DNA of 63,869 nt, filler included, from Octopus bimaculoides (taxonomy: Eukaryota): NCBI RefSeq assembly GCF_001194135.2. It is 5 parts of 5 records of this genome, joined end to end, with 100 filler letters (N's around TTAATTAATTAA, not from the genome) between each part and the next. Parts side by side here need not be neighbours in the genome. Positions count along the whole stretch, not along the records: positions 1 to 21,274 come from NC_068983.1; 4 more parts are not named here. One strand, written 5' to 3'. The notes beneath the pieces were generated by a model that was not told the origin of the DNA, made no database searches, and worked only from the letters and a program-made list of their open reading frames with translations. Both the position numbers and the translations under genes were made by a program. Below are positions 1-21,318 of this stretch, piece by piece. The number at the start of each line of letters is the position of its first letter. Within the stretch, counting starts at the first letter, position 1.

Positions 1-700
1 TTTCACTGCCATGTAGCATGGCTGTTCGTACACATGCGTCATACAGTCTGCATTTTACTCTGAACGAGAGGCCCTTTGTCACCATCAGAGGTAAGAGCTC
101 TCTGAACTTTGACCAGGCTATTTTTATTCTAGCAGCTACACTTTCAGCACACCCTCCCCCGCAACTGACTTGGTCACCTAGGTAACAGAAGCTATCAACT
201 ACTAGTTTTTCTCCCTGGAATGTGGCAGAAGTAGTTCTCTGCACATTTTCAGTGTTTATTGCTCCTGAGCATCTGCCACACACAAAAACTATCTTCCCAG
301 TTAGCCTTCCTTAGATATTGCTGTACCTCTTATGTGTCCAAAGCTTACACTGGGTACATCTTATAAAGTTTCTACCTACACCTTTTCTACAGATCGAGCA
401 GGGTCATCTACCTTAAGGGGTTTGTGGTTTGTCTGCCTTCCTACCTATTAGGACTTTGGTTTTAGCTAGGTTGACTTTAAGGCCCTTCGAGTCTAATCCT
501 TGCTTCCACACCTGAAACTTATCCTCTAGTTCTGAGAGTAACTCAGCAATTAGAGCAAGGTCATCAGCACAGAGGAGCTCCCAGGGGCATCCTGTCTTGA
601 ATTCCTGTGTTATTGCCTGGAGGACTATAATAAATAGGAGGGGGCTAAGGACTGAACCTTTGTGGGCCCCTACCTCTACCCAGAATTCTTCAATGCACTC
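1..700 (-). mobile_element. RTE-clade LINE, degenerate reverse transcriptase fragment
   Basis: Minus-strand translation gives GSVLSPLLFIIVLQAITQEFKTGCPWELLCADD (YADD-like at 560-571) and AWSKFRELLPL...KCRLYDACVRTAMLHGSE; stops and frameshifts present. Confidence 0.85.
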
Positions 701-701
701 G

Positions 702-1311
702 TGTAATTAGGTCCCTCACTGAACTGCCGAGTGAGGCAGGAATGCCACAAAAGAGAAGATTTAATTGTCGATGCGAAGGTACCGCATGTGCAGCGAAATA
801 AGCGTCCAACTGTGCAAACCAAAGCGTGACGTCATCAGTGAAGGAAGAATGATTAGGTAAACTCATGTTTTCGTTACTCGTGTTCTGTCAGAGGAAAACT
901 AGAGAACCGACAGAGTGTTACTTGGAAANNNNNNNNNNNNNNNNNNNNNNNNNNNNNNNNNNNNNNNNNNNNNNNNNNNNNNNNNNNNNNNNNNNNNNNN
1001 NNNNNNNNNNNNNNNNNNNNNGTGTGCAGATAATGAGAGATAAAATATCTCTTAACGAAATTTTAAGTCGTGTACTGCGAGCACAAAGGAGAAAAATTTT
1101 TCTTCGTCGCCAAACCTGCTTTTGTGCATGAGAGGCGCGTAGAGCAGAGAGAGTGAACAAGCTCAAGAACTGTCTTATATAGGTGTCCTTCCGGAAAGGC
1201 TTACTGTCTCGTTGCGCATGCCCACCGGAAGTTGGTGAGATCTCGCTCCGGTCTCGAGCAGCCAATGGCTGTCAGCAAGATCTCAATATGGCGCGTCTGT
1301 GCGACACTACA
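702..1311 (-). mobile_element. Probable solo LTR (LTR-C), related to the LTRs of Gypsy-A; contains a 94-N gap
   Basis: Minus strand begins TGTAGTGTCGCACAGACGCGCCATATTGAGATCT at 1311 and ends ...CCTAATTACA at 702; first ~80 bp align with the Gypsy-A LTR; no TSD found. Confidence 0.7.
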
Positions 1312-1374
1312 GTATCTTCCCGAAATATTTCCAGCACTCTTGACTTGAATGGCTCATGAATTCCACGGCTAGCA

Positions 1375-1916
1375 TTATACAATGTTGATTGTCCCTTTCT
1401 TTTCTTTGCTATCAAGGATGAAATAACAGTTCGAATTTTTGTATCCGATGGTAAATCGGAAACGTCCAGGATGTTTACGTTTAAGTTCCACCAACATTTT
1501 ACTTGGACCTCGTTTCATAGCTTCGTTTTCATTAACCAAATTAAACATATCAATAATTTCTTGTTTAAATGGATCCACATACTTTCGACCATACTTATTA
1601 CCATGCTTTCTTGTTCTTGCCCATCTTGTTTCAAATCCACAACACTCATTATTATGCTGGATCACTTCATGAATGGGATCAAACATCTTAAGTTCTTCAA
1701 CATTTGAACAAGTATTAATCACCTCAAATTGAGGCTGTTCATATATATCTTTAGCATAAACAATAGCTTGACTGATTAAATTATGGATTTCCATTATGCA
1801 ATTATAGATTCCATTTTGCAATTATGGATTTCCATTTTGTAGGCAGTTGTAAATTCCCTACGACATAAATTACATTGAAGAAGATTTTCATCGTCTAATT
1901 TCATATCCAAATCATT
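1375..1916 (-). pseudogene. C-terminal segment of a split DNA-transposon transposase (Sola-like)
   Basis: NDLDMKLDDENLLQCNLCRREFTTAYKMEIHNC (zinc-finger-like) then WARTRKHGNKYGRKYVDPFKQEIIDMFN...GPSKMLVELKRKHPGRF; joins segment 7529-8644 once Gypsy-A and one CATT are removed (ASNINDLDM). Confidence 0.7.
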
Positions 1917-2358
1917 TGTAGCGGCACAAGCAGTCAGCGCCATATTGGATGAGATCTCGCGGCAGCCATTGCCACCTCCGAGACTAGAACGAGACCTCAC
2001 CTGCATCCATTTGCCATGCGCGAGCTCACAACGAGGCTCGCGATGGCAAACTAAATAAAATGAAGAAACCACGAGGTAGAGCACACTTCACTGGTTGGGC
2101 CTCTAGGCTAATCCGCTTGTCGTATCTCCTGAGGCAATGGGCCCGCGTAACGGAGAACGACGAATTCACACTGTTTGAGATGACTGCAGAGCGCAACACA
2201 ATACACCCTTGTATATATTGTAAATAAAACTGTTTGAGAACCTGCGTTATGCCTAATACTTCATTACTCGACTGCTGGAATCTTAAGCAACACGAAGAAT
2301 TAGAAATTAATGGGAGAAGGCGATATTCAACCGATATCGAGAACCTTGCCTCTCATTA
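1917..2358 (+). repeat. 5' LTR of Gypsy-A
   Basis: Direct repeat of 7059-7522; lacks a 28-bp segment present in the 3' LTR, with GT microhomology at the deletion. Confidence 0.93.
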
Positions 2359-2370
2359 GGTGACACCCAG
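2357..2370 (+). promoter_or_regulatory. Degenerate primer-binding site, tRNA-Trp-like
   Basis: TAGGTGACACCC at the end of the 5' LTR resembles TGGTGACCCC, the complement of the tRNA-Trp 3' end used by CsRn1-clade elements. Confidence 0.55.
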
Positions 2371-3614
2371 TAAAAGAATTTCCGGCAGCCGAAAGAAGCT
2401 ACAGCGCACCAGAAGACTCCACTTAACTTCAAGCCATTGTTCCATCTGCCGCCACATTTGAATTGCCCCACGTGAAAACAGGACTTTACCAGTCGCGTTC
2501 CATTTTCTGGCGAATTATTTTCAATTGACAAGAAGAAAAAAACAGAAACAAAGAGAAAAATATTTGTTGGTACAACACACGTATATTCACAATGTTTTTG
2601 GCATTTTGTTTTGTTTTCTTTCAGCANNNNNNNNNNNNNNNNNNNNNNNNNNNNNNNNNNNNNNNNNNNNNNNNNNNNNNNNNNNNNNNNNNNNNNNNNN
2701 NNNNNNNNNNNNNNNNNNNNNNNNNNNNNNNNNNNNNNNNNNNNNNNNNNNNNNNNNNNNNNNNNNNNNNNNNNNNNNNNNNNNNNNNNNNNNNNNNNNN
2801 NNNNNNNNNNNNNNNNNNNNNNNNNNNNNNNNNNNNNNNNNNNNNNNNNNNNNNNNNNNNNNNNNNNNNNNNNNNNNNNNNNNNNNNNNNNNNNNNNNNN
2901 NNNNNNNNNNNNNNNNNNNNNNNNNNNNNNNNNNNNNNNNNNNNNNNNNNNNNNNNNNNNNNNNNNNNNNNNNNNNNNNNNNNNNNNNNNNNNNNNNNNN
3001 NNNNNNNNNNNNNNNNNNNNNNNNNNNNNNNNNNNNNNNNNNNNNNNNNNNNNNNNNNNNNNNNNNNNNNNNNNNNNNNNNNNNNNNNNNNNNNNNNNNN
3101 NNNNNNNNNNNNNNNNNNNNNNNNNNNNNNNNNNNNNNNNNNNNNNNNNNNNNNNNNNNNNNNNNNNNNNNNNNNNNNNNNNNNNNNNNNNNNNNNNNNN
3201 NNNNNNNNNNNNNNNNNNNNNNNNNNNNNNNNNNNNNNNNNNNNNNNNNNNNNNNNNNNNNNNNNNNNNNNNNNNNNNNNNNNNNNNNNNNNNNNNNNNN
3301 NNNNNNNNNNNNNNNNNNNNNNNNNNNNNNNNNNNNNNNNNNNNNNNNNNNNNNNNNNNNNNNNNNNNNNNNNNNNNNNNNNNNNNNNNNNNNNNNNNNN
3401 NNNNNNNNNNNNNNNNNNNNNNNNNNNNNNNNNNNNNNNNNNNNNNNNNNNNNNNNNNNNNNNNNNNNNNNNNNNNNNNNNNNNNNNNNNNNNNNNNNNN
3501 NNNNNNNNNNNNNNNNNNNNNNNNNNNNNNNNNNNNNNNNNNNNNNNNNNNNNNNNNNNNNNNNNNNNNNNNNNNNNNNNNNNNNNACACCAGGTATCAG
3601 CATATAGCCCGTAA

Positions 3615-6600
3615 GTGAATTCAGCCTTGTTCTTTCCAATCGCCAAAAAACGAGTCTCGGAGGAATTGAGCACGTCAATTCTCTCCTCTTCATTTTTTAC
3701 TCATCGTGCATTCCTCGTAAAAGATTTGGTGTCTAAGACACAATTCATGGTTGATACCGGTTCTTCTTGCAGTATTTGGCCTCTTCGTCTCACTGCAGAC
3801 AGGCCTAAGCATTCTGCCATTGTTTTGCACGCAATCGACTCGTCTCTCATTGCTACTTTTGGTCGGATTTCTTCACGCCTGGATATTAGTCTTCGTCGAG
3901 ATTTTCAATGGGTTTTTGTCATAGCTGATATGCCGCATCCTATTCTGAGAGCGGACTTTTCAGATTATTTTAATCTATTGGTAGATATCAAGCGACAGAG
4001 ACTCGTCGACGGTTCTACGTCTTTGTCTGCACCTGCAAAGGCCGCTACCAATGCTGTTCTCAGTCCTTCATTTTTTGTCGCCACTGCTGGTGATCCATTT
4101 CATTCTCTTTTGGCTTCTTTTCCAGAACTAGTAGATCAGTCTTTTCCTTCGACAAAACCTACTCACTCGACCCTCCACTATATTATCACCACTTGACCAC
4201 CTGTCTTTTCACGTCCGCGGCGACTTGCTCCTGACCGTCCTAAGAAGGCTAGGTCTGAATTTGAGCACATGCTCCAGCTTGGCCTGATACGCCCCTCCAC
4301 CAGCCCATGGGCATCTCCCCTTCATTTGGTACGAAAAGGGGATTCTGATTTTTGCCCGGTGGGGGATTATAGACGTTTGAATGCGGTCACTGCTCCCGAT
4401 CGCTATCCTATAAGAAATCTCCAGGACTTCTCTAATCTGCATGGTTGTACCATTTTTTCTAAGGTCGACCTCGTTCGCGCCTATCGTCAAATACCAGTCA
4501 ATCCTGAGGATGTACCAAAAACTGCCATCACTACTCCTTTTGGCAGCTTCGAGTTCCTTTTTATGAGCTTCGGGTTGCAGAAGGCCACGAACACGTTCCA
4601 ATGATTTATCAATGACGTTGTCTGTGGACTTGATTTTGTGTTCGCTTACGTTTAGGACATACTCATTGCAGGCGACACGCGTGAGAATCACCTCCAACAC
4701 TTAAATCAAATCTTTCAGCGTCTTCGCGCATACAGTGTGCGAATCAACCCTGATAAGTGTGTTTTCAGGCAGTCCTCTCTGGAATTTCTGCGGCATTATA
4801 TCGACTCAAATGGTATCAGACCTCTCTCTACCAAAGTCGATGCAATTCAGTGCATCGCACCCCTCACTTTATTACGCCAACTTCGGCACTTTTTGGGAGT
4901 AGTCAACTTCTACAGACGCTTCATTTGTGATTGTGCAGACAAGTTACTTCCTTTGACTCAGCTATTGAAAGCAAATACTAAAAGGAATTCTCTCATTACT
5001 TTATCTGCCGAGGCGTTATCTGCTTTTCAGTCAATCAAAAAAGAAATAACTTCTGTTCCTTTGCTTGCACATCCGGTTCCCGATGCTCCTCTCTCTTTAA
5101 CCGTTGATGCATCGGATTCTGCGGTTGGTGCTGTTTTGCAGCAAAACGTAGACAATCAAACTAAACCTTTAGCGTTTTTTTCTCGTCAATTAAAGCCAGC
5201 CGAACGTCGGTACAGTACTTTTGATCGTGAGCTCTTGGCGATCTACCCCTCGGTTCGTCATTTTCAACATCAACTCGAAGGCCGAGATTTTGTGATTTAT
5301 ACTTTTCACAATCCTCTTATGTTTGCTCTATCATCTAAATCGGACAAATCCTCGCCTCGTGCTTTTCGTTACCTGGATTACATTTCCCAGTTCACGAGTG
5401 ACATTCGGCACATACCTGGAACAGAGAACGTGCCTGCTGATGCACTCTCTCGTCTTCCTGTGTGCTCCCTTTCATCTCCTGCTGCAATCGATTTAACTAC
5501 AATTGCGCAGGATCAGCCAGCTCTGGACACTTTGGATTTAGCTTCTACCAAGTTGTCCTGTTGCAAGTTTGCCTATCTTCCACTTCCGTCTGCTGAAGGC
5601 ACCATTCTTTGTGACACAGCTACTGGTTCTCCCAGGCCGTTTGCACCTGAGAACCACCAGCACTCTGTGTTTGATGTCTTGCATTCACTGTCACATCCTG
5701 GCGTCGCTGCCTCAGGGAAGCTTATTACGGCTCAGTTTTTCTGGCCTAATATGCGCCGGATGATCACCGATTGGGCGCGCTCTTATGTGAAATGCCAGCG
5801 TTCTAAAACCCACGTGCACATTCGCACTCCTCTTGGACAGTTTTCTCCTCTGGAGACTCGCTTTCGCCATGTCCACATTGATCTGGTTCGACCATGGCCT
5901 GTGAGTCGCGGTTTCTCTTACATATTGACATGCGTCGATCGATTCTCTCGTTGGCCAGAGGTCATTCCGATAGTGGACATTTCCGTTTCTAACTGGATTG
6001 CTCGCTTTGATGTCACAGCTAAAATAATCACTGATTGCGAACGCCAGTTCGAGGCTTTCCTATTTCGTGAATTATCACGAATCCTAGGCGTTCATCACAT
6101 TCGTACGACCAGCTACCACCCAGCCTCCAATGGGATGGTCGAACGTTTTCACAGGCAACTGAATGCCACTCTATGCGCCGCTCCTGATCCGCAGTCTTGG
6201 ACAAAATTCTGCCTATCGTTCTTCTTAGTTATCGCACTGCTGTTAAATCAGACTTGGGCTTCTCCTCTGCTGAACTCCTTTACGGTACCACTCTGGCATT
6301 CCCTGGTACAGTGTTTGTGCCAGACAACTCATCGCCTCCTGATCTAACGTCGCATGTCACCAGACTTCGCTCGTATTTCTCAAGTCTTCTCCCCTTGCAT
6401 CCGCATGACCAGTCTATTTCCTCTCACGACCCACCGGATATTGACAAATGGACTCGTGTTTTTGTTCGGGATGATTCTGTCAGAGGACTACTCATTTCTC
6501 CTTATAAGGGACCATTTCGTGTGCGATTGTGCACACCTAAAACTTTTAGTCTTGACATCAATGGTCGAGCAGAGACCGTGTCGGTTGACAGATTTAAAAG

Positions 6601-6808
6601 GACACATTTTGAGGTGTCCACACCCTTCGATGACACCCCAAAAACGCCTACCTTTGATCCTTTACAACCACCTGCACATGCACCTTTGACCGCAACACCC
6701 CCACCTCCACCTTCGTCACCACTACCTAACACGAACAAACCCTATGTCACCAGGACAGGCCACACGGTGCATTGGCCCCCAAAACTCATTAAAACTATTT
6801 ATATCTGA
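3615..6808 (+). pseudogene. pol: Gypsy-A pol (aspartic protease, RT, RNase H, integrase), frameshifted
   Basis: MVDTGS protease; [32 protein letters not shown] with the YVDD site broken by a stop (AYV*DI); LTVDASD and YSTFDRELLA RNase H; HVHIDLV and SNGMVERFHRQL integrase. Confidence 0.93.
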
Positions 6809-7044
6809 CAATCTCTTTTGTGTTTCCTGTGACAGACAATTGCTTTCTTGTGTTACTGAACAATTCCAATACTCTGCCATTAAACATTTTGTCAAATTTT
6901 GTGCATGCCAATTTATATTTCTTGCAATTATTTTTCTATTTGACTTATCACATTTTTGTACCATATCTTGTTAGTTGCGATCAGTTGCCATCTTGGCTCT
7001 TTCTTGTGTCTGCTCCAATTATTCTGTTTTCTCACTGCTGCACT

Positions 7045-7054
7045 GAGGGAGGAG
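7045..7054 (+). promoter_or_regulatory. Polypurine tract of Gypsy-A
   Basis: GAGGGAGGAG a few bases upstream of the 3' LTR start TGTAG at 7059. Confidence 0.8.
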
Positions 7055-7058
7055 CCCT

Positions 7059-7524
7059 TGTAGCAGCACAAGCAGTCAGCGCCATATTGGATGAGATATC
7101 GCAGCAGTCATTTCTCTGAGACTGGAGCGAGACCTCACCTGCATCCATTTGCCATGCGCGAGATCACAACGAGGCTCGCGATGGCAAACTAAATAAAAGG
7201 AAGAAACCACGAGGTTCGATCTCTTTTCCCTGCGACCGCTTGTAGAGCACACTTCACTGGTTGGGCCTCTAGGCTAATCCGCTTGTCGTATCTCTTGGGG
7301 CAATGAGCCCGCGTAATGGAGAACAACGATTCCCCCGTTTGAGATGGTTGCAGAGCGCAACACAATACATACTTGTATATATTGTAAATAAAACTGTTTG
7401 AAAACCTGCGTTTTGCCTAAGACTTCTTTCCTCGACTGCTGGAGTCTTAAGCAACACGAAGAATTAGAAATTAATGGGAGAAGGCGATATTCAACCGATA
7501 TCGAGAACCTTGCCTCTCATTATA
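7059..7524 (+). repeat. 3' LTR of Gypsy-A
   Basis: Direct repeat of 1917-2358; ends CATTATA, followed by TSD CATT. Confidence 0.92.
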
Positions 7525-7528
7525 CATT

Positions 7529-8644
7529 AATATTTGATGCTACAGCAATCCAATACGATGCTTCTCTGGGATATAACCCCCAACACCATAAACGATACAT
7601 TTTGTTAAGCTGCCTCTATCTTTCTCTACAACACCAATATCGTCAGCAGTGTCTGTATCAAATATTTCATTTTCATTGGAAGCACAATCTTCTTCATCTG
7701 ATTCGCTTTCACAATTTCCTTCATTTATGTTGTTCGTAGTGCCATTGATAAGGTTGTATGTTGCTGTCAATAGTAAGTTCGAATTTTCATAAACTGAAGC
7801 GGAATTTCTTGTTAAGTCAAACTGTACTTCCATATGATCACATATGTTTTGTAATTTTCCTATTATCTCCAAGTTTTCCTGTTCAAACTGTTCAATAACA
7901 TGCCTGTTAATACAAACCAATTCTGCCACTGTATTTCTTACACTGCCATTAGCATTTAAAGCATCAACTAATTCAACAGGAGTTATAACATCTGAACCCA
8001 TATTACAATGCATATACACATGACTCATAGCTGTAGCAAAATGAGCGTCGATACTGCCTTTACCATCTTGTACACCAGGGTGTACCAAAGTACAAAGTTT
8101 AAGGTTGTAACTATCTGCAATTTTATATAATGTAAACAATTAGTTGCCCTTCTTGTAACATCTTGCGTTGTCAGATTGTACATAAAGATTTCGAATGTAT
8201 GGAAATTTGGTCGATATTTATCTACATACTTGTATCAAAATAGAACATAACAACCACATAGTCTTGCTTACTATCCCCAGTAGAAATGTGATCGAAGTAA
8301 GTGATACGATAATCCTTTATATTTTCAGTATTACGCCGTTCTTCATCGGTGTATCTTGAATACATCATGGTTCCATGCCACGATGACCCTTTCTTACCGT
8401 AAAAATCTGTAGTTTTTTCCCTACAGTATATAGCTTCGAATTTCATTTTGAAATCCATAACAACCATAGCATCTTCTAAACGTAAATTGAACATTATTTC
8501 ATTGCGTTGTTTAAGTACACGATGACCAAATAAAAGATATAATTTTTCCATCACATCATTCAATAGAATTTCATGTTCTGGGCTCACATGTCGTTTAATG
8601 TATTGTATTACATGCTTGGGGAAGCAACAAACACCACATTGTTT
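7529..8644 (-). pseudogene. Catalytic-core segment of the split Sola-like transposase
   Basis: VMDFKMKFEAIYCREKTTDFYGKKGSSWHG, YVQSDNARCYK and QDGKGSIDAHFATAM give a candidate D-D-D triad; in frame with the upstream segment across the GTTT TSD (ISEAEMKQCGVCCFPKH). Confidence 0.75.
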
Positions 8645-8998
8645 TGTAGTGACGCATAGTTCTAGACGTTATGTTGGAACATTCATCTGCGCATGCGCAA
8701 GGATTAGAACCTTCCGAAGACCTGACGGAAGCACCTTGTGCACATGCACAGTTATCATCAGCAGCTAGGGTTCACCACCATTCACCCTCTTCGATCACGG
8801 CTTCTGACCGGGCAGGACGCAATTTACAGTAGCTCCGTCGAGAATGGGACGTTTAATGGAGAGCGGCACCGCGAGTCTGTAATAATGCCTAATTGCCTTG
8901 GTGCCTAACTACCAACCCTGCTGCTTCTTCATCTAGGTGTTCACAGCTACCGTTAACCAGAGATGGAACGTTTATTCAGAGAAATAAATTATTATTGT
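8645..8998 (+). repeat. 5' LTR of Gypsy-B (5' part, interrupted by the Penelope element)
   Basis: Aligns to 16009-16277 up to AATAAATTATTATTGTT, then switches to Penelope sequence. Confidence 0.88.
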
Positions 8999-9117
8999 TG
9001 TTGTATTTGGGGATGGTCATATTGCCAGTTTAGCCAATAAAAACACACGCACTGTATATTTGGTGTTAATTTGCTTCAGCTTTATATTACATTACATTAC
9101 ATTAATCCTATTATTTC

Positions 9118-9162
9118 GGCCAGAGTTCTTTCGTCACACTTCTGTGACCTCATCAGTGGTCC
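9118..9162 (-). ncRNA. Minimal type I hammerhead ribozyme motif, sense to the Penelope ORF
   Basis: GGACCA-CUGAUGA-G-GUCACA(GAAG)UGUGAC-GAAA-GAACUC-UGGCC: core, 6-bp stem II, minimal stem III, CUC cleavage triplet, CCA/UGG stem I. Confidence 0.75.
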
Positions 9163-10172
9163 TTTGCTTACTTCTTTCTTATGTGTGTCCCACCTTGCTA
9201 ACTATCAGCCATTTTATATTTTGTATTCCTATTGTATTTGTCTACGCATGCGTATCCTTCTTTGTGTGTCTATGTTTTGTAAGTGCATGTGTGTGTATGG
9301 GGAGTGCCTGTATTATCTATATCCTCTGCTAATACATGTTCGTTTATTTATTTATTTGTTCATGTGTTTATACCTACTTTTTTTGTATTTAATTTAATTT
9401 TGTTAACGCATGTAGTTTTAATTCCATTTGTTTATCTATGTATTGTATTATATTTTGTTCATATTGTTATCGGTTTATGGGGAATTTATTGTCATATGTT
9501 GTGGTTTGTTGGGGGTGTGCGTTAGTGTTCCATTCCAGTTTCTTATTCAGGCAAGGTTTATCTTCTATTATGTGTGTAGCATCTGTAATTTGTCTAAGTG
9601 CTGCGTCTGTGCTATATGTGGACAAGATTTTAATTTCTATGTTGTTGAGTGAGCCTCCGTGTTCCTGCTCAGCGTGCTGGTACAGAACTGATGAGCTCTT
9701 CTCTTCCTTAAGTTCCCTCCAGTTTTTCATTTACCCGCTCTCCTGTGCTCAGTACTGTTTCCCCTACATTCGTCATTGTCTTGTTACTGCATTTTCCTTC
9801 TGTACATCTTATACTATAGACCACATTTCTGGTTTTACAGTTTGTTTGTGGGCTAAATCTACATACAGTATAGTTCCTATCAGTGCAGGGGGTTCTACTA
9901 AAAGGGTATGTTCTACTGATAAGGGATTTGAACAAATAAATCTCGCTAGAAGACGAACATGAACAAATAAATAAATAAAAACAAGAATAAATGAACATGT
10001 ATTAACAGAGGATATAGATAATACAGGCACTCCCCATACACACACATGCACTTACAATAACATAGACACACATAGAGGGATACGCATGCGTAGACACATA
10101 CAATAGGAATACAAAATACAAAATGGCTGATAGTTAGCAAAGTGAGACACACATAAGAAAGAAGAAAGCAAA

Positions 10173-10217
10173 GGACCACTGATGAGGTCACAGAAATGTG
10201 ACGAAAGAACTCTGGCC
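10173..10217 (+). ncRNA. Second hammerhead motif, in the inverted pseudo-LTR
   Basis: Same as 9118-9162 except the stem II loop is GAAA. Confidence 0.75.
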
Positions 10218-11210
10218 GAAATAGGATTAATGTAATGTAATGTAATATAAAGCTGAAGCAAATTAACACCAAATATAAAGTGCGTGTGTTTTTATTGGCT
10301 AAACTAGCAATATGACCATCCCCAAATACAACAACATCTGTTTCAACACACGATTTNNNNNNNNNNNNNNNNNNNNNNNNNNNNNNNNNNNNNNNNNNNN
10401 NNNNNNNNNNNNNNNNNNNNNNNNNNNNNNNNNNNNNNNNNNNNNNNNNNNNNNNNNNNNNNNNNNNNNNNNNNNNNNNNNNNNNNNNNNNNNNNNNNNN
10501 NNNNNNNNNNNNNNNNNNNNNNNNNNNNNNNNNNNNNNNNNNNNNNNNNNNNNNNNNNNNNNNNNNNNNNNNNNNNNNNNNNNNNNNNNNNNNNNNNNNN
10601 NNNNNNNNNNNNNNNNNNNNNNNNNNNNNNNNNNNNNNNNNNNNNNNNNNNNNNNNNNNNNNNNNNNNNNNNNNNNNNNNNNNNNNNNNNNNNNNNNNNN
10701 NNNNNNNNNNNNNNNNNNNNNNNNNNNNNNNNNNNNNNNNNNNNNNNNNNNNNNNNNNNNNNNNNNNNNNNNNNNNNNNNNNNNNNNNNNNNNNNNNNNN
10801 NNNNNNNNNNNNNNNNNNNNNNNNNNNNNNNNNNNNNNNNNNNNNNNNNNNNNNNNNNNNNNNNNNNNNNNNNNNNNNNNNNNNNNNNNNNNNNNNNNNN
10901 NNNNNNNNNNNNNNNNNNNNNNNNNNNNNNNNNNNNNNNNNNNNNNNNNNNNNNNNNNNNNNNNNNNNNNNNNNNNNNNNNNNNNNNNNNNNNNNNNNNN
11001 NNNNNNNNNNNNNNNNNNNNNNNNNNNNNNNNNNNTCATTTCTTTTCCTGTTTTTTCTTCTTTTTTCACAGCGACGAAGGTTGGTACAAAGAAAAAAAAT
11101 TTTTTTTCTCTCTGCATATAGTACACGATAAACAAAATTGTTTCTCACAATTTTTCTTTTTCTTTTCTCCTTTGTGCACACACTCCTCTACAAACACATT
11201 TTGTCGGTTC

Positions 11211-11923
11211 GGTACTATTCAAGAAGAGTGGTCCCGGTATACGCACTCGCACACTCGCGCATCCGCGCTAGCGAGTCGTGACTAGTCGATCCTCCGATTA
11301 CCTAGCGCGAGTGCGCGTTATGCGCAAAAACATGTATAAGGGTTTTTTCTAAACAAAGTAAATAATTTTTTTTACACAAAGTAAATAATTTATATAAACA
11401 AAATAAATAAATTATACACTACCTGTTTTTGGTAAAGAGTCCATTAAAAAGTCGGTCTTCCAAAATCTACTGTTCAATGGTATCAGTACATGAGGGACAT
11501 TACAAGTAATTATCTTTTGCGTAACCCCTACAAATACAACGGAGGATGGGATAGAGAGGATAAAAATAGGCTTTTAGTCTTTGTACCTGACCGTTCTTCT
11601 GAAACTCTTCTACCACTTATTAAAAAATTTATCAAACCATGGACGACTATATATTTATATATTCTGATTGTTGGAGTGCGTACAATGGGATTACTGAAAT
11701 AGATGTGACACTAAAATACGCTCTGGAAGAACGTAAAACGACGTTTTAAGAGTAAGAAGATGGGGAAGATTAAAATAGAAAAATATTTACTTTGTTTACA
11801 TGTTTTGCGCATACGCGCATTCGCGCTAGATAGTTGTTGTAGGATCGACTAGTCACGACTAGCTAGCGCGGATGCGTGAGTGTGCGAGCGCGCGTACCGA
11901 GACCACTCTTCTTGAATAGTACC
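11211..11923 (+). mobile_element. Merlin (IS1595-like) non-autonomous DNA transposon
   Basis: ~125-bp TIRs beginning GGTACTATTCAAGAAGAGTGGTC; perfect 8-bp TSD GTCGGTTC (11203-11210, 11924-11931); internal VPDRSSETLLPLIKKFIKP-TTIY..SDCWSAY transposase remnant. Confidence 0.9.
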
Positions 11924-12029
11924 GTCGGTTCACTATTCGGTTTTCTTCGTTTTCTCGTGTTTCATCTCAATTTCTCTTTGTTCCTTTTCGTCGTTTTGCT
12001 TCTATTCGTTTTCCTTTCCTTTTGGCAGG

Positions 12030-12515
12030 CGTCTCTCACATCGTTACCTATATTTACGGGAGATGTGACTCTGTGGTTTGTTCAGTTGGAAGCACATTTT
12101 TCGGTTCACAGCATTTCTCCCACACAGTAATTGCAGCTTTTGTATTGCAGCATGCCTCCTCAACTCGCAACTTCAACTAAAGATCTCGTTACAAATCCTA
12201 GCCCAGACTCTACTTATGCGTCTGTCAAAGCGGAGATTCTGCGCTGCAACACCAGGTCTGAAGAAAGTAAATTTAATGAGTTAATGGCACACGAGCAGTT
12301 AGGAGACAGAACCCCGTCACAGTTTTTGCGCCGCTTGCGAGAGTTAAGTGGTAACTCCGCTGACGCACCTCTTCTTAGAAAAAATTTCTTCTCAAGGTTG
12401 CCTTCCAACCTACAAACTATTCTAGCCACAGTCCAACACTGTGGACCAAATCGCCATTATGGCTGATAAAATAATTGAATTCTCTGCACAGCCATCGTCA
12501 CGTGGTGCTTGTGTC
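12030..12515 (+). pseudogene. gag: Gypsy-B gag, N-terminal part
   Basis: LPIFTGDVTLWFVQLEAHF...TYASVKAEIL...QLGDRTPSQFLRRLRELSG; internal stop; runs into an N gap. Confidence 0.85.
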
Positions 12516-13430
12516 NNNNNNNNNNNNNNNNNNNNNNNNNNNNNNNNNNNNNNNNNNNNNNNNNNNNNNNNNNNNNNNNNNNNNNNNNNNNNNNNNNNNN
12601 NNNNNNNNNNNNNNNNNNNNNNNNNNNNNNNNNNNNNNNNNNNNNNNNNNNNNNNNNNNNNNNNNNNNNNNNNNNNNNNNNNNNNNNNNNNNNNNNNNNN
12701 NNNNNNNNNNNNNNNNNNNNNNNNNNNNNNNNNNNNNNNNNNNNNNNNNNNNNNNNNNNNNNNNNNNNNNNNNNNNNNNNNNNNNNNNNNNNNNNNNNNN
12801 NNNNNNNNNNNNNNNNNNNNNNNNNNNNNNNNNNNNNNNNNNNNNNNNNNNNNNNNNNNNNNNNNNNNNNNNNNNNNNNNNNNNNNNNNNNNNNNNNNNN
12901 NNNNNNNNNNNNNNNNNNNNNNNNNNNNNNNNNNNNNNNNNNNNNNNNNNNNNNNNNNNNNNNNNNNNNNNNNNNNNNNNNNNNNNNNNNNNNNNNNNNN
13001 NNNNNNNNNNNNNNNNNNNNNNNNNNNNNNNNNNNNNNNNNNNNNNNNNNNNNNNNNNNNNNNNNNNNNNNNNNNNNNNNNNNNNNNNNNNNNNNNNNNN
13101 NNNNNNNNNNNNNNNNNNNNNNNNNNNNNNNNNNNNNNNNNNNNNNNNNNNNNNNNNNNNNNNNNNNNNNNNNNNNNNNNNNNNNNNNNNNNNNNNNNNN
13201 NNNNNNNNNNNNNNNNNNNNNNNNNNNNNNNNNNNNNNNNNNNNNNNNNNNNNNNNNNNNNNNNNNNNNNNNNNNNNNNNNNNNNNNNNNNNNNNNNNNN
13301 NNNNNNNNNNNNNNNNNNNNNNNNNNNNNNNNNNNNNNNNNNNNNNNNNNNNNNNNNNNNNNNNNNNNNNNNNNNNNNNNNNNNNNNNNNNNNNNNNNNN
13401 NNNNNNNNNNNNNNNNNNNNNNNNNNNNNN

Positions 13431-15749
13431 TCAGTAACAGTACTTGACCGATATCATATAAGGAATCTCCAAGATTTTTCGGTGCATCTTCATGGCTGTA
13501 CAATTTTTTTCAAAAGTTGACCATATACGTGCTTATCACCAAATACCGGTCAACCCAGCCGATGTTCCGGAAACTGCCATTACTACTCCATTTGAGTTTT
13601 TATACATGAGTTTCGGTTTGCGAAACGCTACTAGCACGTTCCAGCGTTTCATAGACGAAGTTGTCCGCGGACTTGATTTTGTGTTCGCTTATGTCGATGA
13701 TATCCTCATCGCAAGCGACACACAGGAGAATCATCTCCGGCACTTGTCTCAGCTTTTGCAGCGTCTTCGCGACTATGGTGTGCGCATTAATCCAAGCAAG
13801 TGTGTGTTCGGGGAATCTTCTCTTGACTTTCTCGGCCATCATATTGACTCGAGTGGAATCAGACCTCTCTCGTCTAAAGTCGATGCGATTCAGCGCATCA
13901 CACCTCCTACTTCTTTGTGCCAGGTGAGGCATTATCTTGGCATGGTAAATTTCTATCGACGCTTTATACCCGGTTGTGCGGATAAGCTACTTCCTCTGAC
14001 CCAGCTATTAAAGAACACCTCCAAAAAGAACGGTCAAATCACCCTTTCAACTGAAGCATTATCTGCTTTCGAGTCCATCAAGAAAGAGTTAGCTTCTGTT
14101 CCTTTGCTTGCACATCCGATTCCTGGTGCTTCTCTCTCTTTAACTGTGGATGCATCGGACACTGCGATTGGCGCTGTGCTGCAACACACAGTGTACGATT
14201 GTACTCGACCTCTGGCTTTCTTTTCTCGCCAACTGCAACCAGCTGAGCGACGATACAGCACCTTTGATCGTGAGCTCCTAGCGGTCTACCTGTCAGTTCG
14301 TCATTTTCAACATCAACTCGAAGGTCGAGATTTTGCGATCTATATTGATCACAAGCCTCTTACGTTTGCCCTGTCATCTAAAACGAATAAACTCACGCCT
14401 CGTGCTTTCCGTCACCTGGATTTTATTTCATAATTTACCAGTGACATTCGTCATATATTTGGAAAAGAGAACGTTCCTGCTGACGCTCTTTCTCGTCTTC
14501 CAGTCTGTCCTCTTTCGTCTCCTGCTGCAATTGATTTAACTGCCATTTCACAGGAGCAACCACCTTTGGCATCGTTAGACTTAACTTCGCCTAAGTTCTC
14601 CTGTTGCCAGTTTGCCTATCTTCCGCTTCCGTCAGCTGAAGGCACTATTCTCTGTGATACTTCCACTGGTTCTCCCAGGCCACTCGTGCCTGAGAATCAT
14701 CAACGCTCAGTGTTTGAGGCACTACACTCCTTATCACATCCTGACATCGCTGCTACCATTAAGCTTATCACTACTCGGTTTTTATGGCCGAATATGCGTC
14801 GCACTATTACCTCTTGGACATGCACTTGCTCCAAGTGCCAACGGTCCATGATTCAACGGCACATTCGTGCCCCACTTGGACATTTTCCTCCAACGGAGGC
14901 CCGTTTTCACTATGTCCACATTGATCTGGTTGGACCATGGCCTGTGAGTCGCGGGTTCTCTTATCTTTTAACATGTGTCGATCGCTTCTCTCGAAGGCCA
15001 GAAGCCATTCCAATAGCAGATATTTCTGCTGAATCTGTTGCTCGAGCTTTTATTTCTAACTGGATTTCCTGTTTCGGAGTTCCGTCCAGATTAACTACTG
15101 ATCGAGGGCGTCAGTTTGAAGCTTCTTTATTTCGTGAATTGTCACGTATTCTAGGTATGCACCACATTCGCACGACCATTTATCATCCAGCCTCTAATGG
15201 ATTAGTTGAACGGTTCCATAGACAGCTCAAGGCCGCTCTACGTGCCTCTTCAGATCCAAAGTCTTGGACTGAATTTCTGCCAATTGCTCTTCTTGGTTGT
15301 CGTACTGCTGTCAAGGCAGACCTGGGTTTTTCTTCTGGTACCACACTGGCATTGTCTGGTACGATGTTGGTGCCAGACACTTCGCAGCTCCATGATCCAG
15401 CGTCTTACGTCGCCAGGCTTCGCACGTATTTTTCACATGGTTCCCCGGGAACAATCTTCACCCTCTCATGTCCCACCGGATATGAACTCTTGGTCGCATG
15501 CTTTTGTTCGAGATGACTCTGTCAAGGGACCTCTTATTTCTCCTTATAAAGGACCTTTTCGTGTGCTTTCTCGCACACCCAAAGTTTTCACGATCGATGT
15601 CAATGGTCGTTCGGAGACCGTCTCTGTAGATCGGCTTAAAAAGGCATATTTTGAGGTGTCCACATCTTTTGATGACACCGCTGCCGCGCCCACCTTTGAA
15701 CCTACACATGCACCTTTGTCAACACCATCACCTTCACATGCACCTTTGT
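13431..15749 (+). pseudogene. pol: Gypsy-B pol (RT, RNase H, integrase)
   Basis: FAYVDDILIAS, LTVDASD, YSTFDRELLA, HIDLVGP, LTTDRGRQFE, SNGLVERFHRQLK; stop at 14431-14433 and frameshifts. Confidence 0.93.
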
Positions 15750-16008
15750 NNNNNNNNNNNNNNNNNNNNNNNNNNNNNNNNNNNNNNNNNNNNNNNNNNN
15801 NNNNNNNNNNNNNNNNNNNNNNNNNNNNNNNNNNNNNNNNNNNNNNNNNNNNNNNNNNNNNNNNNNNNNNNNNNNNNNNNNNNNNNNNNNNNNNNNNNNN
15901 NNNNNNNNNNNNNNNNNNNNNNNNNNNNNNNNNNNNNNNNNNNNNNNNNNNNNNNNNNNNNNNNNNNNNNNNNNNNNNNNNNNNNNNNNNNNNNNNNNNN
16001 NNNNNNNN

Positions 16009-16370
16009 AAGACCTGACGAAAGCCCCTTGTGCGCATGCACAGTCATCAGCAGCAGCTAGGGTTCACCACCATTCATCCTCTTCGATCACGGCTTCTGAC
16101 CGGGCAGGACGCAACCTAGAGCAGCTCCGTCAAGAATGGGACGCTTAATGGCGAGCGGCACCGCGAGTCTGTAATAATGCCTTATTGCCTTGGTGCCTAA
16201 CTACCAACCCTGCTGCTTCTTCACCTACCGCTAACCAGAGATGGAACATTTATTCAGAAAAATAAATTATTATTGTTTTTTTCAGAGAGATCTTGTCCTC
16301 ACCTTTTCGTTCAATGAATTATGTATGGAATTGTGAAGCACCCAGCAAGTGCTAAATCACATTTTCTACA
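16009..16370 (+). repeat. 3' LTR of Gypsy-B (start hidden in N gap)
   Basis: Matches the 5' LTR; ends TTTTCTACA followed by TSD GTTT. Confidence 0.88.
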
Positions 16371-16374
16371 GTTT

Positions 16375-17516
16375 CATTTCCGCTTCAGAGATGGATAAAG
16401 AAAACTCTTTATCCGTGACACTACATGTAGAAATGTGTCCCTCATAAGTTGTCTTAATGTAAGCTTCTAAAACCATTAATAATAGCATTCAAAGATTCTG
16501 ATTCAGCACTGGTAGCAACAACAGTCTTCAAACGGGCAAACGTATCATGCATTAATACTCCCGACACATAATCGACCGATTGTTTAATTGTTTGATCCTT
16601 GGTAGTTAACGTTTTGACTATCTTCCGGAATGATGTGGAGTCTAATTGTTTCTTTGTAATCATGTAGCATTATAGTTGTATTCTTTTTCCTAATCAGCTT
16701 GGGGAGGTGTATTTCTTCGCCATTAATCGTAAATGTTTTGGTACCCCATGAGATTCGGCATACACTAGCATCCGACAAAACAAACACCACTGTAGCTTCC
16801 ATTTGATCACGATCGTATCATATAATTGATCTATTGAAAGGTGTAAGCTGCTTTCCACTTGCCATATGTTTATACTTTCGTCTTAATGAAGCTACTTTCT
16901 TCATACCAATACCAAAACGATCTTTCAAAACACTTGAAACTAAGGATACCGCTAATGGAGCTGTAACAGCATCAGCTTGTACAACATTTCTTGGCAATGC
17001 ATCTCGTACTTTAATGTTATTTTCCGCTAATATGCCTTCATCGACGACACCTTCTCCTTCGTTATTTAACAACCTCTTTCATAAGGCCTTCGGCATCATA
17101 TGGACTAATGATAGAGCATAATTTTTTCATTATGGTACTGTTAAGTTTCACTAGTCGCTTTTTAGCTTTTTCGTCAAAGTCTGCCATTCGGGTACTTTCA
17201 CGTTTTGCTTTTCCTGGTAACGATGATGCTGATTTTAAACCAAATGCTTCATACAATGCCCCCACTTTTGAAACAATTCGTGATGGATCGCTGACTTCTG
17301 GTCCAGAACCCGCTTGTTCCGTATACACACTACGTTTTCTTGTATTCATACTTGTTTATATGTGCCGACACCTCCCATAAGTCGTATTCTCTTTGTGGCA
17401 CGTGTGTTTACATTTTCGTTGCATTTATTATCTCCACGACATGTACATCCACATCTGTAACATCCTTGACAACTTATATATCTACCTTTTTTGTAAGTAC
17501 ATGATAATTTTGACAT
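16375..17516 (-). pseudogene. N-terminal segment of the split Sola-like transposase
   Basis: ATG at 17516 opens MSKLSCTYKKGRYISCQGCYRCGCTC; consecutive frameshifted ORFs (17062-17349, 16818-17072, 16584-16802, 16454-16663) lead in frame into the segment at 8644. Confidence 0.65.
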
Positions 17517-17964
17517 AACTTCCGATTGGGTGAAGCAAAATCAAAATCTGGACTACCTGTGTGGTTATTTTTGATATATTAATTTTAACCAATCAAATTA
17601 TCCCGTTTATTATTCAGTTTGCGACAATTCAGTATTTTAAAGTTCTACAAAAAGTCAATACTCTGACCCGCGAAGCGACTAAAAATCAGAGTTTAAAATA
17701 CAAGACACTCATAACTTTTGCTTAAATTCCAGCAATGGACCATTCTTGAACAATATCAGTACATCATAGTGACAAAGTAACGCAGAAGGTATCAGGTGGT
17801 TGTGGATGTGCTAAAAACAACGGCTAAATTGCCTAAATCACACACAAAAATTTTATTTGCCTAATCTTTTGAATTCCCATGTGTAGAAGACAAATTCACA
17901 AAAAATAGAAAAGTTACGAGAGGTTATATGGGGTGCTTAAATCAAAATTCTGCCCCCCTGACTA

Positions 17965-19844
17965 AGAAGAAATACTGACAGTATTCCATTGAATACTGTA
18001 TGACTGTATTCTGTCGCTACAGAATGAAGCAAAACCAATGCGTCTCATATGTATGGATGTACTGTCAAATGATAACATGAAACCAACTAAGCTTAAATCC
18101 ATTCAGAGACAAAGCTCAAAGACAAGTAAAACAATATAGTAGAATATCTTAGAAAACTGTGCAGTTATTTAGTAATCAATTATGTAAAAATAATAATGGT
18201 TGACTGGCATCCTATGAAATTTCTAAAATTATAGCAAAGGTTGTGAAACCCCAATGTCATTGGTGAAATTATAATTGCCAGCGGTATCTGTCATAATTTC
18301 CTCATTTATGAAACAAAATGGTAATGAAATTACTTGTAAGATTCCATTAAGTAACTCATCAGTGTCACGGTGCATTGATGAAAGATATAGAAAAGCAGCT
18401 AGTAGCCAAATTACAAGTACAGAAATGTCCTTTTCAACCTGATGAATCTACCCTGAGAGATAATAAAGCTATTTTATTGGCATATGGTTGCTTTCTTTTT
18501 TTTTTTTTTTGGATGGTAATGAGGAAATTCTTTTTGTCAGACATCTTAAAACAGACACTAAAGGCAAAACAATTTTCAAAGATGCTGTAACTTATTTCGA
18601 GGATCATAATATTTCCCTCAGGTGTATAATAGCTTGTGCTAATGACAGTGCTCCGTCCATGATTGGCAGATACAGAGGTTTTCTTGCCTATTTAATAAAT
18701 ACTGTATTTTGTATACACTGTGTGATAACACCAAAATGAGCAAAACAATTGCAAAACAAGTGCACATCTGCACGATGCCCCTAAAAGTGTAATATCATTT
18801 ACAAGACTGCATCTTTCATGAATTCTGTAATGAAAATGAAGAATTTAAATGCTTTGTAATTCACACAGAGATGAGATGGTTATCTTAAGGTAAATTGTTT
18901 GTATCATTTTTTTCTTGCACTTTGGTATACTATTGTTTCATTCCTGGCTAACAACAATCTCAGCTAACAAATGGTTGCAGCTAAATGCGTTATTTATCAG
19001 ATATATTTGATAAAATTTATTTGATTAACAAACCGCTTCAAGGAGAAAACAGCTCTAGAAATTGTATGTTGTGTATTATTACGATTTCCTAGTTTGGAAT
19101 CAATTAACAGTAATCTGCATGATGATGACCTTGTATACTGAACGTCTGAAAACTTGCATAATGATATGCAAGCTCAATTTAACGACCTGCTGAAGTTAAA
19201 TATACCACGTTGGGTGACATTTCTTTTTGAAGTTAATGTTGCTGTCTCATTGAATTGCAGAGTGATGAAATATTTCAGGCAAGATTTAAAGATGGAAAAC
19301 ATAATGTATGGAAAAGAAATGACACTGCTACAAAGTATCCACTATTCTGGTGGGGAAGAACAGTTGTACCTTACTGCTTTTCCTTTATCTTACCTTCTTG
19401 AATATGGTTTTAGCCATGTCACTAACTTACTGTTAGAAGCTTGTAATCGAATCGACATTATAGAAAAAGGTGATCTTCAATTATCATTGACAGCATTGGA
19501 GTAGAGGATTTTAAAACTAGCAGAACAGCACCAACCGCCAGACTTGCATTAAAGAAATTGACACTAAAGTACTCCCTTATTTTAATAAATATATACTTGT
19601 ATATTTATGTTAATTTTACTTGTGAACATTCATTTTCCAGAGAATTTGGTTAAGAAATTGGTCATAAGTCTATAGTACACAATATATTTTAACAATTTTT
19701 ATACAAGTCCTAATAATATTTAATTATAAAAATACAATATAATTTTTTAAACATTGAATGGGTATGATAGGTGGGGGGGGGGGTCTACAGGAGTGAGATA
19801 GGAATCAAAAGGGTCCACAGATAAAAAAAGGTTGAGAACCCCTG
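17965..19844 (+). mobile_element. hAT (Buster/Charlie-like) transposon remnant, 5' end missing
   Basis: PLSNSSVSRCIDE, QPDEST, DSAPSMIG, CIHC, TEMRWLS and FPLSYLLEYGFS motifs; 3' TIR ...GGTTGAGAACCCCTG followed by GTTTACAT (nnnTAnnn). Confidence 0.85.
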
Positions 19845-19916
19845 GTTTACATAGCTGTTGTTGAAGTTGAGAGTTTGAAACATAGGTGACAGTTACTATT
19901 TTCAAGAAACTCTTCC

Positions 19917-20990
19917 TCAAAATATGTCTGTTGTAACAGTGGAGTTGTGTATTTTGATGTGAATGTCTAGGAATGGTAGTTCATTGTAGCTTGTTTCTGT
20001 TGTGAATTTGATAGATGGACGCAGTATGTTGAGGATATTGTGAAATGTTCGTAGGTCTTCTTTTGATCTATCCCAAAAAGTGAAACAGTCATCGAGGTAG
20101 CGCTTCCATTTCTTCACAATGTCTTCCCTGAAGTTGTGATCAAAAAGTTTTTCGACTTCCTCGTAAAGTTTACCTTCTAGGTAACCGATGACTAGGTTGA
20201 CATGCGAAAGTGCAAATTTCATACCCATAGCCGTGCTCTTTATCTCTCGGTATACCTTATCAAATCTGAAGGTCTTTTCTTCTAGTACCAGACGAGTGGC
20301 TTTAATAATGAAGTTAGATTTGAAACGTTCATCTATACATCTTCTGTGTCTCTTTCGACTGCTTTTAGGCCCAAGGTATGTTGGTATAGAGGTTAGTGAC
20401 ATCAAAACTTGCAAGTATAGTAGCTTCCGGAATAGTAGTTGGGATATGTTTGAGAAAGTCCATGTAATCCCGTATATAGCTGGGTATTAATGGGCATAAG
20501 GGTTTGAGGAGTATGTCCAAGAGGCGACTCAGTTGTGTTGGGGATTGGGGCCCAGCAACTATCAATCTCATTATGAGGTCTGTGGGTCTTTGTATTTTTA
20601 CATATTGGCTCCTCTGTTCATTTATGCCCTTCTGTATTTCGGAGCTTTTGTGGATTTTGGGCAACCCATAGAAATTGCTCTCCTTGATTATGGAGTTGCA
20701 TAAATAGTTTTTTTCCTTGTCTGTGAAGGAGTCCTGATATTGGTTAATTAATGTTCTGATTTTATTCAGTGTTGCTTTTCCCGGGTGTCTTGATTTCTCC
20801 TTATAGTATGTTTGATCTGTTAAAATTTGTAGTATTTTTCCTTTGTAGTAGTCTGTGTCCCTGATTATTATCGCTTCACTCTTGTCGGCTTCCTTTGGGA
20901 TGATTGAATTGTCGTTCTTTAGGCTTTGTAATGCTTCTTTTTCTCCTTCATGAAAGTTTTGTTTGCATTTACGGGGAATGAGAGGGAACT
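19917..20990 (-). mobile_element. Penelope-like element, reverse transcriptase fragment
   Basis: PKIHK, LASFDVTNLYTNIP, STAMGMKFA, WKRYLDDCF, IKFTTETSYNELPFLDI. Confidence 0.88.
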
Positions 20991-21318
20991 TCGAGTACTT
21001 TTCTCACCCCTAAATATTTATAAGTGTATATAAATTCATTGGTTACTATAATTTATTAGTTTCTTTTGCATATTCTTAGTTTATGCATGTGTATGCAAAT
21101 ATAGTATTGGTATATCCCATTTATGTTCATTAGAAATTAAATAAATAAAGAATTTTGACATGTACGAATATTTATTTCCCCCCACTGTATTTCGTATCAA
21201 GGCAAATTGTTGATGTTTTATTTAAACATTGATTATTCAACACGAAGCTTTTTCTAACTGCTTTCCTCTCTCTCNNNNNNNNNNNNNNNNNNNNNNNNNN
21301 NNNNNNNNNNNNNNNNNN

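Follow-up and report, generated by a model that had tools for sequence, protein, structure and literature searches.

A decayed transposase gene, very probably of the Sola3 group, split by nested Gypsy insertions in the Octopus bimaculoides genome

The window analyzed here is a 63,869-nucleotide stretch of DNA from Octopus bimaculoides (RefSeq assembly GCF_001194135.2), of which positions 1 to 21,274 come from record NC_068983.1. It consists of transposable elements nested and piled on one another, and within this pile lies a copy of a transposase gene, since minus-strand translation yields three blocks of a single transposase-like protein (17516-16375, 8644-7529, and 1916 downwards). We conclude with high confidence that this copy is an old, broken cut-and-paste DNA transposon of the Sola3 group, which was later split by nested insertions of Gypsy retrotransposons.

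A first-pass annotation of this DNA, made from the sequence alone, had proposed that the three minus-strand pieces are one gene for a three-aspartate (DDD) transposase, split by two Gypsy insertions, and had named splicing of the pieces followed by tblastn as a check. The tblastn alignments of intact relatives on the window are collinear over all three pieces, piece 2 reaching an E-value of 7e-99 and pieces 1 and 3 one of 6e-33, and they cross the join between pieces 1 and 2 (join 1) in frame; given these E-values and the collinearity, the resemblance is not due to chance. Piece 1 (16375-17516, minus strand), to which residues 35-327 of the relative P0006 as well as the relative P0005 align, starts with an ATG at 17516 and comprises an eight-cysteine N-terminal motif (17516-17439), after which come a basic stretch and then an N-terminal region of helical character. 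This motif, CxCKKGxCxxCxxCxxCxCxC, is found at or near the N terminus in 15 relatives, and the window copy keeps six of its eight cysteines, the other two having changed to tyrosine. Piece 2 (7529-8644, minus strand) contains a Cys/His cluster, the RNase H-like DDD core, and an acidic linker; its three catalytic aspartate codons (8455-8453, 8172-8170, and 8049-8047) are all intact. Piece 3 (1312-1916, minus strand) encodes a C2HC/C2H2-like finger (1874-1818), whose C2H2 similarity is weak only, and a conserved C-terminal domain with the motifs GWA..HG.KYG.KY (1623-1579) and KHPGRF (1476-1459). The first-pass annotation had ended this piece at 1375, whereas the coding sequence runs in another frame to 1312: past a frameshift at ~1458, it reads DLPSDTKIRTVISSLIAKKRKGQ...IFREDT from 1457 to 1312, which matches the conserved C terminus of the relatives. 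Every motif quoted in that annotation was found again, including the Cys-rich N terminus from the ATG at 17516, and those read in the window copy are DFKMKF, FYGKKGSSWHG, SDNARCY, GKGSIDAHF, CNLCRREF...HNC, WARTRKHGNKYGRKY, and KHPGRF.

The assignment to the Sola3 group comes from the catalytic core. RNase H cores of Sola1-1_AP, Sola2-1_HM, Sola3-1_HM, and a Sola3 protein of C. remanei were printed by Majorek et al. 2014 (PMC3985635, supplementary file 5), and we compared a hidden Markov model built from 12 relatives of the window protein with these published cores at Z=1000. The profile matched both Sola3 cores, namely C. remanei CRE_08425 (E 5e-17, 57 bits) and Sola3-1_HM (E 7e-12, 40 bits), whereas the Sola2-1_HM core gave an E-value of only 0.09 (6.5 bits) and the Sola1-1_AP core no match, which bears out the Sola3-like motifs noted at first pass. 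Strings shared by eye are REGQKEYFGKKGMSLH versus REKTTDFYGKKGSSWH, and LYAKSDNASSY versus LYVQSDNARCY. When the C. remanei Sola3 core was used as a query for full-length canonical Sola3 proteins, two fragments only came back. Moreover, Pfam scans of the window protein and the 12 relatives matched no transposase family, and a sequence search of the PDB with the family profile gave weak C2H2-finger matches only. In a published survey, the RNase H-like domains of Sola elements had no detectable Pfam similarity (PMC5751038), and this survey, together with the absent Pfam model, fits the first-pass expectation that annotation would likely overlook the copy.

Alignments of the relatives contain three invariant aspartates, D406, D514, and D555 (P0002 numbering), which correspond to the DFKMKF, SDNA, and GKGxID motifs, respectively. 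In an AlphaFold model of the core (predicted local distance difference test [pLDDT] 87; predicted template modeling score 0.84), the order of secondary structure elements is β1-β2-β3-α1-β4-α2-β5-α, and the aspartates are placed in β1, directly after β4, and where the helix that follows β5 begins. In this confident model, the three aspartates thus stand at the sites that are canonical for an RNase H-like fold; their failure to align to such a core had been named at first pass as an outcome that would refute its reading, and in the model they map onto it. In a Foldseek search of the PDB with the core model, nearly all top matches are RNase H-like enzymes, among them HIV-1 integrase (E 2e-3, probability 0.97), terminase nucleases of herpesviruses and phages, the Mos1 and SETMAR transposases, PIWI domains of Argonaute, and RNase HII. 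With the full-length model (pLDDT 65), Foldseek returned the same kinds of matches, none of them significant. To our knowledge, no Sola structure has been solved.

The family to which the window copy belongs is very large: with E <= 1e-3 as the limit, an exhaustive search with the profile yields 5,498 clusters (50% identity), of which 567 reach E <= 1e-30. The closest relative, P0005 (UniParc UPI00078A67FB), is 64% identical overall and 83% identical across join 1. It is a gene model that fuses transposase fragments, partly in the wrong frame, to a hexosaminidase that resembles human HEXB most (E 1.8e-82); this HEXB-like hexosaminidase indicates that P0005 represents a further copy in an animal genome, annotated as exons, and the model is likely an annotation error stemming from an unmasked Sola3 copy. 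After P0005, the next relatives are at most 42% identical and come from MMETSP transcriptomes, metagenomes, Logan assemblies, and two NCBI assemblies; the sole species-labeled one among these is the diatom Stephanopyxis turris, and their labels include no oomycete. The first-pass suggestion that the closest sequences occur in oomycetes, with horizontal transfer as a corollary, thus finds no support: the nearest relative is an animal gene model, and the remainder are at 42% identity or less, with a diatom as the only label. The Sola3 group is, moreover, said to have been catalogued since Bao et al. 2009. Sola3 signatures have also been reported in bivalves (PMC10294476), and these signatures, the standing of Sola3 as a known group, and the 5,498 clusters leave the claim of an undescribed lineage without support. 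The window copy is an ordinary, heavily decayed Sola3 fossil, and thus a known kind of mobile element.

A related reading, that the copy belongs to an undescribed Sola3-related clade common to animals and stramenopiles or other protists, possibly via horizontal transposon transfer, draws on the marine protist transcriptomes and metagenomes (S. turris included) that supply the nearest full-length relatives past the one animal model, on the lack of a Pfam model, and on the moderate match to the reference Sola3 cores (40-57 bits). However, identities of 29-42% fit ancient vertical divergence equally well, what counts as closest is biased by database content, a close copy sits in an animal gene model, and the family is very large, all of which make such a clade unlikely. 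The sequence databases that we searched are biased toward microbial eukaryotes and metagenomes and hold few unannotated pseudogenes of animal transposable elements; in view of this bias and of the depth of divergence, there is no evidence for horizontal transfer. It is conceivable, if doubtful, that the window copy and its relatives form a Sola3 sub-lineage absent from repeat libraries, marked by the N-terminal eight-cysteine motif, strict targeting of TTAA, and 5'-CAG ends; it would be common to animals and to diatoms or other marine protists, and this might reflect horizontal transposon transfer among marine organisms.

That the family is mobile was seen in the relatives themselves. A protein search with the conceptual protein returned intact relatives of 900-1070 amino acids, with coverage of 88-99% at 29-42% identity, and the contigs with these intact relatives are ~3.4-3.6 kb long with one open reading frame (ORF). 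At their ends (a slash marks the element boundary), contig L002 has a perfect 35-nt inverted repeat in TTAA/CAGTGGAACCACGAG...CTG/TTAA, and L005 has TTAA/CACC...GGTG/TTAA with a 35-nt terminal inverted repeat (TIR) at 89%. In L003, the left end is TTAA/CAGCCAGACC... and the right end is CAGCCGACTC..., its TIRs start with CAGCC, and TTAA stands on both sides. L004 holds the element of L003 from another sample, with a left flank that is unrelated up to the TTAA; the two contigs are thus one element at two sites, with identity beginning exactly at TTAA/CAG. The relatives are therefore TIR-bounded elements with 5'-CAG or 5'-CAC ends and TTAA on both sides. This structure fits the published description of Sola elements, which have a DDD transposase, a 4-bp target-site duplication (TSD), a size of 2-9 kb, and TIRs of 11-1124 bp (PMC10741241).

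Some further features of the relatives were observed. In L002, an eight-cysteine motif (MSCSCKKGYCFQCEECYSCGDCRC..., 238-333) immediately precedes the start called for P0002, and the ORF probably starts ~100 nt before the gene call, or its first part is split off by a frameshift or an intron. P0012, a distant relative of 1331 amino acids, has a Ulp1 protease domain at its C terminus (PF02902, E 1.1e-8), and transposons of other superfamilies have captured Ulp1 domains as well. An NDC10_II gene beside P0008 (L001, 4198-5808) was considered as a second transposon gene and rejected as a chimera, in which a Crypton-like part is joined to a C-terminal half that is a 701-nt, 99.4%-identical copy of a transposase part.

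piggyBac and Kolobok are other cut-and-paste superfamilies that target TTAA, and the TTAA flanks of the relatives could accordingly point to an element of one of these types in place of Sola. Such an assignment is very unlikely, however, because (i) DDE_Tnp_1_7, the piggyBac model, and the other transposase models of Pfam went unmatched by the window protein and the 12 relatives, (ii) Kolobok termini follow the rule 5'-RR...YY-3' (PMC9587614), as opposed to 5'-CAG or 5'-CAC in the relatives, and (iii) the match to the Sola3 cores is both specific and significant.

The reassembly of the Sola3-group gene depends on two joins. Read on the minus strand, join 1 is ...GAAGCGGAAATGAAAC/TGTAG...CTACA/AAACAATGTGGTG, and the interrupting element is Gypsy-B (8645-16370, plus strand), a Ty3/Gypsy retrotransposon with long terminal repeats (LTRs), whose TGTAG...CTACA termini have TG..CA ends and whose LTR pair is 93.0% identical. 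Its TSD, at 8641-8644 and 16371-16374, is GTTT in plus-strand sense, its ORF at 13492-14433 contains RVT_1, RT_RNaseH, and RT_RNaseH_2 (Pfam), and a further ORF at 14566-15516, judged by eye, is presumably an integrase. Deletion of Gypsy-B and one GTTT gives ISEAEMK/QCGVCCFPKHV in a single frame, as the first-pass annotation had it, and relatives align through this point without stops: single tblastn alignments span it for residues 464-567 of P0005 at 83% and for residues 242-416 of P0001 at 56%. Join 1 is confirmed by these single in-frame alignments.

At join 2, between pieces 2 and 3, the interrupting element is Gypsy-A (1917-7524, plus strand), a Ty3/Gypsy LTR retrotransposon with LTRs at 1917-2358 and 7059-~7522 (TG..CA ends, 93.8% identical), a CATT TSD (1913-1916 and 7525-7528), and the Pfam domains RT_RNaseH, Integrase_H2C2, and rve. 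Both Gypsy-A and Gypsy-B thus have the hallmarks of Ty3/Gypsy elements, namely an LTR pair with TG..CA ends, a short TSD, and the pol order reverse transcriptase-RNase H-integrase, the first two domains being detected by Pfam in both elements and integrase in Gypsy-A. Without Gypsy-A and one CATT, the sequence reads ASNIN/DLDMKLDDE, in a frame different from that of the upstream ORF (which ends in ...EKHRIGLL and a stop), so that a frameshift is needed between 7552 and 7534, ~10-20 nt upstream. The CATT pair and the readable peptide reported at first pass therefore stand, whereas the frameshift just upstream had been missed. The protein region at join 2 is a variable acidic linker. Join 2 is weaker than join 1, although the homologous blocks are still ordered and spaced as a simple insertion would leave them.

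Four assembly gaps lie in this region, one of them inside Gypsy-A where gag would be expected (2627-3586) and the other three inside Gypsy-B (10357-11035, 12516-13430, and 15750-16008), and the transposase blocks are free of gaps. Piece 3 and the Gypsy-A 5' LTR share one uninterrupted block (1022-2626); a second (3587-10356) holds the whole of piece 2 between the Gypsy-A 3' LTR and the Gypsy-B 5' LTR; and the Gypsy-B 3' LTR and piece 1 share a third (16009-21274). As every junction between transposase and LTR falls within uninterrupted sequence, the joins are independent of the gap lengths and of the frame across the gaps; all they require is the scaffold order, and the LTR pairs, the TSDs, and the collinearity of the homologous segments speak for that order. 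The four gaps, which are of estimated length and separate the pieces, might suggest a scaffolding artefact in which pieces from different copies were joined; this is highly improbable, given the uninterrupted junctions, the matching 4-bp TSDs and LTR pairs that flank each insert, and the homologues that cross join 1 without loss or overlap of residues.

Decay of the gene extends beyond its insertions. On the spliced DNA, tblastn follows the frame path 3-1-2-3-1-2-1-3-1, that is, at least eight frameshifts, with ~7 in-frame stops; piece 1 accounts for about four frameshifts and several stops, and piece 2 has a frameshift near 8230 and at least two stops in addition to the frameshift near join 2. 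The window copy of the transposase is dead and without present function. A host gene or domesticated transposase that was recently disrupted by retrotransposons, as the single long ORF-like structure without introns might be read, is extremely improbable in view of this damage outside the insertion sites and the two lost conserved cysteines, the location in a nest of transposable elements, and relatives that are TIR-bounded, mobile, and found at different loci.

Against the reading of the copy as a Sola3-group transposon split by insertions stand the following points: (i) the reference Sola3 sequences compared are two published core fragments of ~130 amino acids, not full-length Repbase entries; (ii) the Foldseek search of the PDB with the core model gave no match below E 0.001; (iii) TTAA is a presumed Sola3 target, and 5'-CAG termini are a presumed Sola3 feature; (iv) homology spans join 2 by two codons only; (v) five bases, TTATA (7520-7524), stand unexplained between the terminal CA of the Gypsy-A LTR and the CATT; and (vi) no TIR or TSD of its own is visible for the window copy, whose 3' end is outside the window and whose 5' end was not found.

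At its 3' side, the gene is truncated by a third LTR retrotransposon, Gypsy-C (1-1311, minus strand), which had been missed at first pass. Its LTR starts at 1311 with TGTAGTGTCGCACAG (minus-strand reading TGTAGTGTCGCACAGACGCGCCATATTGAGATC) and is followed by the start of gag (MSLPNHSSF..., MSLPNHSSFTDDVTLWF...); the segment 1214-1294, in inverse orientation, is homologous to the beginning of the Gypsy-A LTR (74%, E 4.5e-5). Gypsy-C cuts off the final ~50-60 codons together with the 3' terminus of the transposon, and this remainder lies beyond the window edge. A reverse-transcriptase fragment of a long interspersed nuclear element with a PHD-like finger (~700-1; RVT_1, E 6.6e-9, Pfam) interrupts Gypsy-C. 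On the 5' side, the flank upstream of the ATG (17517-18487, minus strand), where the 5' untranslated region and the 5' TIR would be expected, contains no recognizable terminus. A search for inverted repeats between the gene flanks (1-1450 versus 17400-19200) found none, and a scan of the flanks for TTAA/CAG and TTAA/CAC found neither.

Near the upstream flank are two ORFs, at 18488-19504 (plus strand) and 19917-20664 (minus strand), which by their look may be fragments of a hAT-type transposase and of a Penelope-like or other reverse transcriptase, respectively; Pfam gave nothing for them at E <= 0.01. Gypsy-B harbors further insertions of its own. One of these, whose inverted arms of ~400 bp are 95-98% complementary, occupies 8996-10336 in its 5' LTR; the homology to that LTR breaks off at ~8995 and is absent from there up to the gap at 10357. 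A 715-bp element (11210-11924) with 84-nt terminal inverted repeats (93%) and TCGGTT on each side also lies inside Gypsy-B, and a string in its internal frame is, on our unverified assumption, like a transposase of ISXO2/Merlin type.

An active element of this kind would have contained a single intronless ORF of ~1,000 amino acids encoding a cut-and-paste transposase. Its eight-cysteine motif and basic stretch probably served zinc-binding DNA recognition and nuclear import; after the basic stretch would come, in order, the helical region, the Cys/His cluster, the RNase H-like core, the acidic linker, the C2HC finger, and the C-terminal domain. The three aspartates of the core would coordinate metal ions for strand cleavage and transfer. 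Active elements would measure ~3.4 kb, with inverted repeats starting 5'-CAG or 5'-CAC and with TTAA flanks, as shown on relatives, and the window copy itself may likewise have targeted TTAA. In our reading, the window copy lost its function and gathered at least eight frameshifts, ~7 stops, and two Cys-to-Tyr changes, after which three Gypsy LTR retrotransposons inserted into it (two in plus-strand and one in minus-strand orientation); these were in turn hit by further insertions.

The main value of these findings lies in annotation: a copy that is fragmented and has no Pfam model would be missed by standard pipelines or, as in P0005, folded into host gene models. The description of the family, with its domain order, three aspartates, TTAA flanks, and 5'-CAG termini, could be the starting point of a repeat-library profile, and a relative that appears intact at ~3.4 kb, such as L002, could be a candidate in transposition assays. 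No functional significance attaches to the dead copy in the window.

Compared with known systems, the interrupting elements have the usual features of Ty3/Gypsy LTR retrotransposons, including TG..CA LTRs in all three and 4-bp TSDs in Gypsy-A and Gypsy-B; decay and further insertions have affected them in their turn, and nothing about them is unusual. The likeness to piggyBac and Kolobok consists in a TTAA duplicated at the insertion sites, as seen in relatives of the window protein. Sola1 and Sola2 elements likewise have DDD transposases and 4-bp TSDs, and the context of the second aspartate in Sola2 is similar (TDGCAGQY, as against SDNARCY here), but they differ in the profile comparison (E 0.09 for Sola2-1_HM; Sola1-1_AP unmatched). 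The likeness to the reference elements of Sola3, Sola3-1_HM of Hydra and CRE_08425 of C. remanei, is read from their cores of ~130 amino acids. With the Sola3 group, the window protein and its relatives share the core motifs D[YFW]xxK, RE...[FY][FY]GK[KS]G.S.H, SDNA..Y, and GK, as well as a DDD triad on an RNase H-like fold, and the relatives also have the 4-bp TSD, the TIRs, and a size within 2-9 kb.

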